This document shows positions 5,952-20,166 of a stretch of 26,425 nt of DNA, in pieces. The notes under the pieces were generated by a model. That model made no database searches, was not told where the DNA came from, and was given only the letters and a program-made list of their open reading frames with translations. Within the stretch, counting starts at the first letter, position 1. Each line of letters begins with the position of its first letter. This DNA comes from Salpingoeca rosetta. Taxonomy: Eukaryota; Protista; Choanoflagellata. The DNA lies in assembly GCA_033442325.1 (NCBI GenBank), contig JAWQFM010000025.1:777215-803639 (forward strand). The letters are read 5' to 3'. The translations under genes and the position numbers were made by a program.

Positions 5952-8900
5952 TCACACCACAGAGGATGTGAAACCACCAATCCGCTTCTTGCTGGAGGCC
6001 GACGATGAACGCAACTGCAACAAAGTTGGGTGCTGCTGCTGCTGTTGTTGTTGTTGTTGTTGTTGTTGTTGTTGTTGTTGTTGTTGTTGTTGTTGTTGTT
6101 GTTGTTGTTGTTGTTGTTGTTGTTGTTGGTGGTGGTGGTGGTGTTGTTGGTGGCGTTGTTGTTGTTGCATGCGTGTGGCTTGTGCCTGCTCGTCCTCCTC
6201 ATCCTCCTCCTTGAAGTAGTGGGCGGTGTGGGCAGCCCTTTCCGGGTTTGCTGCCATTGCTTCTGCAGCTGACGCCACGCCCTGTGCTGACAACGTTGGT
6301 TTGCGCGGGGAGAGTGGAGACGGCGACATGACGTTGTTTGACTGTCGCCGGTGGAGCTGTGCAGCTTTACCGGCATCGCTTCCGCTTGTCCTCTCGCTGC
6401 GTCTGCCGTGATGGCTGTGGCTGCGGCCGTCGCCACTGTTGCCGTGGCCACAGCTGCTGCTGCTCTGCCTCTGCTGCTCTGCCGCTAGCCTGATCTCGTT
6501 GGCGTTCAGGCTGAAGTAGTGCCGGTCGCTTGGAGACGAGGACCCGTGCGGCGACCGCGAGTGCGAGTGCGAGTGCGAGTGCGAGCGGTTTGTGACGGTC
6601 AGGGGCGAGCCCGAGCGCGGAGAGATGGACACCTCTTTACTGCGATCCCCGTCCCAGCCCGCACTGAGCGTGCTGCTGAATCCACTGCCGCGTCGGCTGT
6701 CCAACCCAACGGGAATGGCAAGCTTGCTTCCCCGAGAGGAGGGGATGCTGCGGCCATCGGCGGGGAGGCGGGACGCGGACAGCCGTGAGGACAGCGAGCT
6801 GCCTGTGGTGTGAACGCATTGGGAAAATTTGGGGGGGGGGGGGCGGGGAAGGGGGGAGGTGAGTGAGCGTGAGCGTGAGAGGGAGGGGGTGAGTGAGGGA
6901 TGGGACAAAGTCGGTTGGTTGAAGAATTGTGTCTCGTTGTCAGCGGATGAACAAGATGGGATGAGCAGATACGCACTTGCGCGCAGCGCAACACGGACAC
7001 GTGCACATTCAAACACAAGTGTACGTTGCCACAAGTGTACATTCATAACGCACACACACACACACACACACACACACACACACACACACACACACACACA
7101 CACACACACGATGGCGTACTTTGCTGTGGCGCTGCGAAGAGCGACGATCGCACGTATCCGTTCAGGTCCGTGACTGTGGACGGGCGGGCCAGGGAACCGC
7201 GCTCAACATCTCCAATGTCAAACTCGTCGTCATCGCCATCACCCTCATCATCATCCGCCACATAATCGTCGTCATCATCATCTTGGTGGTGGGAGCGGCG
7301 ACTGCGGCGCCCGCGGCTGATTGGACCCTCCAACTCTCCATCGCCAACATCGTCACCATCGCCGGCACCACAGCTACCACTGCCACCATCATTGTTGGCA
7401 CTATCCTTGCTCGCGCGATCATGTTGGGGGTGCGAGGGGTGTGTGCTTGCCGCCGCGTCACCACGTTCCCGCATGTTCTTCATCGCCATCGCCACCGCCG
7501 TTGGTGAAGCGTATGATGCCTCCGCGTGCGTGGATGCTTCCGTGTCCGCCCGGTTGCTCGATGCCGATGCAGCCGTCACATCAGTCTTCGTTGTTGCCGT
7601 CGTTGGTGTTGTGGTGGCCGCAGCTGCTGCAGGTGTTGTTGATGACGTGGTGGTAGCGGTGGTTGTTGGCGTGTCGCTTGTGCGGCGCGCGGCTGCAGAG
7701 TCACCATCACCCGTCTCCGCCCGTGAACCAGCCGGCACCTTGTGTGTGTGTGTGTGTGTGTGTGTGTGTGTGTGTGTGTGTGTGTGTGTGTGTGTGTGTG
7801 TGTGTGTGTGTGTGTGTGTGTGTGTGTGTGTGTGTGTGTGTGTGTGTGAATATGTGAAAATGTGAATATGTGTGTATCGCTTGTGTGAGTGGGTGTTCGT
7901 CTTGTGGAAAACAGGACTCGCCAAGACCACCACCACAACAAAGCCACCACCACAATGACAGATACAGCACTTCCATGTCACACCTCCCCCGCCCCCCGCG
8001 TGACGACTTACTCGTGGGCAGGGCACGCCGAGGGTAATTGGAAGCCAGGTCTGATCCTTCTGGCTACACACGTCAATCACCTGCACAGTACCGCAACAGA
8101 AACATGCGTGAGAGATGGCGATGTGGAGCGATGTGGAGCAGCAAACAAACAATACATGAAGAGAGGCACCCTCACACCCAAATTCACACGCACAACTATG
8201 CAAATTTACGCACGCACAAGTGCACACAAATGCACGCACACATATATTGATATTGACCAACGCCACCACATGCCTACGCTTCATCCCCTTCCACTGCACC
8301 GCACCTCTGCGAGTGATGGTGCACACGGTTTGCCGTCGAGCTCAAAACAGGACCCGTTGTCCTGGATGAGCACGTGCAGAATGTCTTTGTTCTGATCGAC
8401 GACAGACAGCGCGTACGCGCCGGGGCCACTGTGTTTGTGTTTGTGTGCGTGTTGTGGTTGTGGTTGTGGTTGTGTGTGTGTGTGTGTGTTTGTAAGCGGT
8501 GAGCTCACCAGTAACAGGTATGCAACACCAAACAACCAAAGCAACAAACGAAACCGCAACAACAATAACATGTAGCCACAAGTCCTCACCACCCTCCACT
8601 CCCGTCTCAGCCTCGCACTCACGCGCTGCTGTCTCTGACGAGGAACATGCCCGGGACGAGTCCATATGACATGAGACGGTCGTTTGCGTCGTCGCGGCTG
8701 AGACCACGGAAGTACCACAGGCTGTTGGCAAGGCTGCGCACAGAGTCAGACGTATCTGGCAGCTGGTTGGAGGCGATGCGCTCGCAGTCCTTTGTCAAAA
8801 AGTCGGAGCAGTCGGGGTTGAGGCGGCATGGCAGCTCTGATTCGAGGAGGGGGGGAAGTGATGCATGATGAGTTATGGATGATGAGTGGTTGATTGGAGG

Positions 8901-20166: not shown

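Follow-up and report, generated by a model that had tools for sequence, protein, structure and literature searches.

The DNA analysed here is a stretch of 26,425 nucleotides from the choanoflagellate Salpingoeca rosetta (assembly GCA_033442325.1, contig JAWQFM010000025.1, positions 777,215 to 803,639 of the forward strand), referred to below as the window; all coordinates are counted from its first letter. Its minus strand carries an expressed and conserved gene in which an exchange factor for Ras-family GTPases (RasGEF) of the cyclic-nucleotide type is fused to a phosphotyrosine-binding (PTB)-like domain and two SH2 domains. On balance, the locus encodes one protein of ~1,950 residues. The domain order that is favoured, with reasonable rather than high confidence, is that of probably three ankyrin repeats, a cyclic-nucleotide-binding (CNB) domain, a REM domain, a linker, a catalytic CDC25 domain, the PTB-like domain, SH2, SH2, and a disordered tail. 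A preliminary description, made from the letters of the DNA, had proposed a similar protein between positions 20166 and 5952. The genome searched was the 55.4-Mb assembly of 68 contigs; the window has a GC content of ~55 %. Families were tested exon by exon or in scripts, not on the full spliced protein.

The REM domain through the second SH2 domain are part of a single in-frame spliced mRNA. RNA mapping covered window positions 8000-13999 and made use of the raw reads of two stranded RNA-seq runs and of contigs from two older RNA runs. The first mates of the stranded runs were located almost exclusively on the plus strand, which fits an mRNA from the minus strand. Sixteen exons, from 13855 down to 8010, were spliced by reads and contigs into one open frame: 13855-13501, 13186-13005, 12786-12723, 12496-12337, 12072-11982, 11759-11667, an exon that is absent from the assembly, 11293-11163, 10974-10625, 10429-10298, 10058-9807, 9566-9421, 9175-9038, 8836-8623, 8428-8305, and 8080-8010. 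Ten splice joints are GT..AG on the minus strand (CT..AC on the plus strand) and were crossed by 12-79 reads each in one run and by 29-208 reads in the other; the contigs of the two older runs contain these joints too. After shifts of the cut, these introns start with GTG, GTA, or GTAT, and all of them end with CAG. Three more joints lie inside repeats that were skipped and were placed using the record coordinates of the contigs and the reading frame. Junction read counts were alike along the gene. The whole stretch from REM to the second SH2 domain is spanned by a 3041-nt RNA contig that starts 49 nt above 13855 and extends past 8010, and a contig of 3519 nt leads from 13186 to 1235 nt past 7736. 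On the upstream side, loose read ends lead from 13855 to 14129, and on the downstream side from 8010 to 7736. Transcripts that split the locus, which the preliminary description had named as the finding that would speak against it, were not seen between 13855 and 8010, where the RNA joints are continuous and the frame is open. Its phase-consistent splicing thus stands on RNA for REM through the second SH2 domain, while the joins of ankyrin repeats to CNB and of CNB to REM are those of a model.

The introns mostly measure ~190-320 nt, and (TG)n or (CA)n microsatellites are present in most of them, often directly at the donor. Between window positions 5900 and 20300, these runs reach 20-100 copies in most introns, and several donors read GTGTGT, which makes the exact site ambiguous. 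In one RNA run (X21), position 13975 is connected to 11941 by five reads in which 12 foreign letters intervene; these reads may represent a chimera, a back-splice, or an artefact.

The REM domain proposed earlier was borne out: its first exon (14129-14252, minus strand) matched Pfam RasGEF_N with 24.5 bits over profile positions 2-39 (match 14129-14248), and reads join it, from 14129 to 13855, to the exons that follow. The second REM exon (13501-13855), which also holds the start of the linker between REM and CDC25, is defined by pieces of RNA contigs and by reads and is open in frame; on its own it gave no meaningful match in Pfam or the PDB. Two linker exons come next (13186-13005 and 12786-12723, with RNA joints), at the position taken by the RA domain in Epac. 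The linker between REM and CDC25 counts ~95 residues. An RA/Ubl domain had been placed here. No Pfam RA match was obtained in the window, comparison of the linker with RA by hhalign scored 10.9, which is within the range of shuffled sequences, and a protein-atlas search with a linker exon was uninformative; the assignment thus found no support.

The CDC25 domain starts on exons 12496-12337, 12072-11982, and 11759-11667, which cover positions 2-37, 46-74, and 77-106 of the Pfam RasGEF profile and are joined by RNA either directly or through the arithmetic of contig records. It continues on exons 11293-11163 and 10974-10625 (profile 146-171; pieces of RNA), the latter of which contains the end of CDC25 together with a conserved linker toward the PTB-like domain. 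RasGEF matches were found on four successive exons with the profile order kept (20.8 + 23.7 + 26.9 + 26.0 bits, ~97 in total). Exons of the region 10625-11293, among them 10974-10625, matched the CDC25 domain of RasGRF1 in the PDB, with E=0.001 and 4.7e-5. The exon-level top matches in that database were RasGRF1, SOS1/2, yeast Cdc25, and RalGPS; Epac2 chains were not among the matches listed, which is weak evidence given the shortness of the queries. A specificity for Ras/Rap, as suggested in the preliminary description, is conjectural; the CDC25 exons are nearer to RasGRF1/SOS than to Epac.

What looks like an intron at 11294-11666 hides a gap in the assembly in which a CDC25 exon of ~136-143 nt is missing, as became apparent from reads, contigs, and a relative. 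At 11667 and at 11293, reads and contigs continue into sequence that the window lacks; its translation begins with T-W-A-L-V-S-E-S-K-R on one side and ends with ...F-G-G-V-S on the other. The 30-mers taken from the two sides are both absent from all 68 contigs, even with two mismatches allowed. The exon, the size of which was derived from contig coordinates, corresponds to RasGEF profile positions 107-145, exactly the part that the flanking exons leave uncovered, and the full profile is covered once RNA supplies it. RNA from three studies with the same species label carries the exon, and an exon of the relative (positions 783-929 of its contig) covers profile positions 108-145. A (GT)55 run adjoins the gap, and a collapse during assembly is, therefore, the likely cause. 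As the exon is missing, any in-frame splice across 11667-11293 that is drawn from the DNA alone is an artefact, and the gap would break any gene model made in this way. The preliminary description was right about the CDC25 domain, as the RasGEF matches on successive exons show, albeit with a splice that skipped the missing exon. Similar collapses may hide in other microsatellite-rich introns of this assembly.

Exons 10429-10298 and 10058-9807 (region 9807-10429), joined by RNA, encode a PTB-like domain, predicted to be of the PID type with a PH-like fold. A pair made of the spliced window sequence and that of the relative was compared by hhalign with a set of 12 PID domains from this genome, which gave a score of 22.8 (P=0.0023) over 77 columns in the register expected for a PID, that is, strand 1, a helix, and strands 2-6. 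Among 200 shuffled queries, the highest score was 20.0. The language-model clusters nearest to the PTB exon mostly have a PH-like fold (RME-8_N, Vps36 GLUE, GRAM, myosin TH1, and bacterial PH), although their scores are low (0.80-0.85). With a home-made PID profile, the relative reached 7.0 bits and the window 4.6 bits, both of them marginal values. The exon is present as a single copy in the genome, and a sequence comparison of it with the PDB yielded nothing meaningful. With moderate confidence, the region is taken to be a divergent PID-type PTB domain and a putative phosphotyrosine reader. Many PTB domains bind unphosphorylated peptides.

The first SH2 domain (9038-9566) is encoded by exons 9566-9421 and 9175-9038, connected by an RNA joint, and the second (8010-8836) by exons 8836-8623, 8428-8305, and 8080-8010, likewise connected by RNA. 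Each matched Pfam SH2 in two complementary exon halves, the first with 17.0 bits (profile 8-36) and 17.6 bits (38-77), 34.6 bits in sum, and the second with 24.8 bits (1-30) and 15.4 bits (33-71), 40.2 bits in sum. The arginine of the FLVR motif is retained in both domains, as F-V-L-R-D-S in the first and F-L-V-R-D-S in the second. The tandem SH2 pair proposed earlier is thus well founded; of the three phosphotyrosine readers that had been counted, the two SH2 domains stand, while the third is the weakly identified PTB. Downstream lies a low-complexity C-terminal tail of ~489 residues (5952-7736), encoded by an exon from 7736 to ~7110 and another from 6802 to 5952. The tail is linked by RNA to 8010; its last intron was placed by the model. 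The frame is open from 7736 and runs to a stop codon at 5952-5954, where the model agrees with the end coordinate of 5952 given in the preliminary description. A long trinucleotide array at window positions 5952-6170 includes a poly-Gln run of ~40 residues directly before this stop.

The relative mentioned above is represented by a contig of 4615 nt (L001) from a DNA run of another organism. It has the corresponding exons in unchanged order, namely those for CDC25, the linker, the PTB-like domain, the first SH2 domain, and the beginning of the second one, with 53-94 % amino acid identity. The linker toward the PTB-like domain is 70 % identical, and SH2 matches with the FLVR arginine are seen in this contig too. 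As the same order is present in a distant relative, the fusion of the GEF with the readers is conserved rather than a peculiarity of a single genome. The GC content of the relative's contig is 36 %, compared to ~55 % here, a very large shift between related lineages in spite of the level of exon identity.

Only two relatives were found in the databases; both are open-frame fragments and both lie on this same contig. A HMMER search with the PTB exon in 1.8 billion representative proteins returned one fragment of 130 residues from one relative. Word-index protein searches returned the relative's 154-residue fragment alone, a result that says little as their length filter leaves out full-length kin. 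The preliminary description did not recognize the architecture from any described protein, and in keeping with this, it was not found described in the literature. Choanoflagellates have exceptionally diverse combinations of phosphotyrosine domains (PMC4342544; Manning 2008, as cited therein). Unusual phosphotyrosine combinations are a known hallmark of this group, which makes the protein less surprising.

Upstream of REM, the CNB domain is encoded by several exons on the minus strand. The start of its beta barrel (16821-16942) matched Pfam cNMP_binding with 13.6 bits (profile 3-22), and the exon with the phosphate-binding cassette (16287-16394) did so with 22.0 bits (profile 43-77). These matches on complementary halves of the profile confirm the CNB domain that had been recognized from the DNA. 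The cassette exon was also matched in a profile search of the own genome, and its best PDB matches are PKG and the regulatory subunits of PKA. The cassette reads F-G-E-L-A-T-I-Y-Q-T-R-R-H-C-T-V; it closely resembles the cassette of PKA regulatory subunits and retains the nucleotide-contacting Glu and Arg, which argues for real nucleotide binding, as predicted from these residues. Between the two exons, the model places a small one (16569-16620, GGFKVMRK...AQAQ) that fits its neighbours in phase and restores the usual order of CNB strands. A modelled exon at 15892-16004, after the barrel, is the probable C-helix or lid. An exon upstream of the barrel (17205-17372), also modelled, ends with ...LMRLNIFYEDDQ; it has the best codon score among the upstream exons and no Pfam match. 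Among the matches listed, this is the sole locus of the genome at which cNMP_binding and RasGEF profiles match together, and it appears to be the only CNB-linked RasGEF of the organism.

The ankyrin block precedes the CNB exons, on the same strand and with intron-sized spacing. Both versions of an exon-chaining model yielded credible exons for the ankyrin repeats and the CNB domain, whereas their exons in the intervals 18180-17372 and 15892-14655 are unreliable. The putative first coding exon (19476-19571), selected by this model, starts with M-A-L-S-E-E and leads into the ankyrin block; its coding frame scores +20 and the other frames are negative. The next exon (19155-19267) contains G-N-T-P-L-H-D-A and matched Pfam Ank with 16.4 bits, as well as Ank_4 and Ank_5, weakly; its borders are those of the model. 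The exon at 18807-18913, which ends with ...LDLAKEN(G) at a GTACAC donor, matched designed ankyrin-repeat proteins in the PDB (phmmer, E=2.6e-12), with 62 ankyrin chains at E<1. The consensus of tandem 33-residue ankyrin repeats is thus seen in the PDB match of one exon and in the Pfam match of another. A modelled exon that starts with (G)HGDMCVLLQK (18180-18255) completes the last repeat. It has a TAG acceptor, a phase that fits the preceding exon, a coding frame of +7.5 with the other frames negative, and an uncertain 3' border. Two of the modelled joints complete the ankyrin consensus across splices. A trinucleotide array rich in Asn, Ser, and Gln is present at window positions 19990-20120, near the start proposed in the preliminary description.

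The extent of the gene in the upstream direction was estimated from a 2110-nt RNA contig that ends on exon 13855-13501 and continues for 1755 nt beyond 13855 in the 5' direction. The exons modelled between 17372 and 14129 sum to ~1160 nt, so ~600 nt of this contig must come from farther upstream, an amount that the ankyrin exons fit. The ankyrin repeats, probably three in number, are therefore likely to belong to this gene. The arithmetic is compatible with a start near 19571 as well as with one at 20166, and further exons up to 20166 may be present. The start at 20166 given in the preliminary description comes from a model, and it fits the contig arithmetic as well as 19571 does. The splice by which that description tied the ankyrin block to the rest of the gene fared similarly: the peptides it quoted are found at 18828-18805 and 18253-18224 on the minus strand and their phase fits, while the join itself is modelled and is one of many.

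In comparison with known systems, the protein may be set beside Epac (RAPGEF3/4/5), which has the same order of CNB, REM, linker, and CDC25 and with which it probably has in common an autoinhibition that is relieved by cyclic nucleotide. Unlike Epac, it is without a supported RA domain and without a DEP domain, which Epac has N-terminal to the CNB: of the 20 Pfam DEP matches in the genome, none falls within the window. The cassette, with F-G-E, is PKA-like and departs from the Epac form, PDB searches with the CDC25 exons find RasGRF1/SOS rather than Epac2, and the chain additionally has ankyrin repeats, a PTB-like domain, two SH2 domains, and a long tail. The lack of DEP led to the rejection of a canonical Epac orthologue, and together with the PKA-like cassette and the CDC25 matches to RasGRF1, SOS, yeast Cdc25, and RalGPS, it indicates that the protein is not a member of the Epac family. 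PDZ-GEF (RAPGEF2/6) and Dictyostelium GbpD/GbpC likewise combine a CNB domain and a CDC25 GEF on one chain and are not known to have SH2 or PTB modules; the Dictyostelium proteins show that the pairing of CNB and CDC25 occurs outside animals.

An SH2 domain and a CDC25-type domain are combined on one polypeptide in BCAR3/NSP (SH2D3). NSP proteins have a single SH2 domain N-terminal to a closed, inactive CDC25-like fold, and are not known to have REM or CNB. In contrast, the two SH2 domains here are located C-terminally of a CDC25 domain with a full RasGEF profile and a REM domain. A PTB domain next to SH2 is known from Shc (PTB-SH2) and tensin (SH2-PTB), and a tandem SH2 pair from SHP2, ZAP-70/Syk, and p85. 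The linker between the SH2 domains of the present pair is ~40 residues long, a spacing that hints at binding to doubly phosphorylated motifs. Shc, tensin, and the tandem-SH2 proteins act as adaptors, phosphatases, or kinases and are connected to Ras via Grb2-SOS, whereas here the readers are fused to the exchange factor. The protein fits the known pattern of shuffled phosphotyrosine domains in choanoflagellates (PMC4342544), although this particular combination was not found described.

From these features, a mechanism can be proposed. By analogy with Epac, the CNB domain may hold the CDC25 site closed until cyclic AMP or cyclic GMP binds. The tandem SH2 pair, perhaps together with the PTB-like domain, would recruit the enzyme to receptors or scaffolds at the membrane that carry phosphorylated tyrosines. 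In that case, a Ras-family GTPase would be charged with GTP solely at the sites and times at which the two signals coincide. Such a coincidence detector is plausible. Its strict form, a hard-wired AND gate in which the GTPase is loaded only with the CNB domain opened and the SH2/PTB modules docked on a phosphotyrosine receptor, is put forward tentatively, as a reading that is less probable than not.

Several observations weigh against the protein as drawn here and against its proposed regulation. The ankyrin-CNB and CNB-REM joins are models that have many in-frame alternatives, the 1755-nt extension of the RNA contig could instead represent a long first exon or a 5' untranslated region, and the genome as assembled cannot encode an intact CDC25 domain. 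The Pfam profiles of the PTB type (PF00640, PF08416, and PF14719), which find many PID domains in the genome, find none in the window, and an AlphaFold prediction for the single PTB exon of 83 residues was poor (pLDDT 48). The PTB assignment of the preliminary description accordingly has the hhalign result and the PH-like neighbours on its side and the Pfam result against it. The CNB autoinhibition is assumed from Epac for a protein that has no DEP domain and whose CDC25 domain is nearer to RasGRF1/SOS. The ankyrin exons (19571-18180) might form a separate small gene upstream, with the GEF gene starting between 18180 and 17372 and having no ankyrin repeats. This is rather unlikely, albeit worth consideration: the join is modelled, the number of phase-consistent chains between the third ankyrin exon and the first CNB exon is 705, which makes phase consistency weak evidence for the link, and the interval 18180-17372 has poor coding scores in all frames. 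On the other hand, the RNA contig extends ~600 nt beyond the modelled CNB-to-REM exons, the long microsatellites of the interval are unlikely to have been crossed unspliced by a contig of short reads, and the ankyrin exons have the strand and the intron-like spacing of the rest of the gene. A genuine loss of the CDC25 exon between 11667 and 11293 from the sequenced strain, which would leave a broken gene, agrees with the absence of its letters from the window and from every contig of the assembly. It is nevertheless improbable, given that RNA of three studies carries the exon, that the relative has it, and that the gap lies beside the (GT)55 run, a typical site of assembly collapse. Least probable by far is a merger, by the reading or by read-through transcription, of a GEF gene with a neighbouring gene for a PTB-SH2-SH2 adaptor. 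It is common for a multi-domain fusion that was predicted from genomic sequence alone to be a merged gene model. Here, the end of CDC25 and the segment that leads to the PTB-like domain are in one exon (10974-10625), which speaks for one gene; moreover, the downstream joints are all in frame without a stop, junction read counts are similar, and the relative keeps the linker. This explanation was rejected because of the shared exon, the in-frame joints, and the conserved linker.

With a single protein accepted, its regulation could still differ from a two-input gate. The CNB domain might be structural or constitutive, as in PDZ-GEF, the CNB domain of which is not known to respond to cyclic AMP, and the PTB-like domain might bind unphosphorylated peptides or lipids, many PTB domains being independent of phosphotyrosine. 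In that case, the protein would act as a scaffold, or as a RasGEF whose recruitment depends solely on phosphotyrosine. The lack of DEP, a CDC25 domain that is not Epac-like, and the weak identification of the PTB favour this alternative, whereas the similarity of the cassette to PKA regulatory subunits, with the nucleotide-contacting Glu and Arg in place, pleads against it; it is considered unlikely, in its regulatory as well as in its scaffold form, without being far-fetched.

In animals, receptors with tyrosine kinase activity are coupled to Ras by separate adaptors, and cyclic AMP is coupled to Rap by Epac; here, both modules are located on one exchange factor. If the AND gate is true, a single polypeptide takes the place of the Shc-Grb2-SOS adaptor chain of animals. 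A protist near the root of animals would have fused both input modules, and its distant relative has retained the fusion of the GEF with the readers. The protein could thus serve as a natural test case for signalling circuits that were built by domain shuffling before animals, and it offers a compact natural design for a predicted two-input GTPase switch. Genome editing is available in some choanoflagellates.

Elsewhere in the same genome, DEP and full-length RasGEF matches occur within 8 kb of each other together with a weak PID match (contig C9, 1337460-1345405; genome G000), which points to a second multi-domain GEF. Within the window, an open reading frame of 991 residues is present on the plus strand at 2743-5715. 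It ends ~240 nt from the stop codon of the gene described here, with which it forms a convergent pair.

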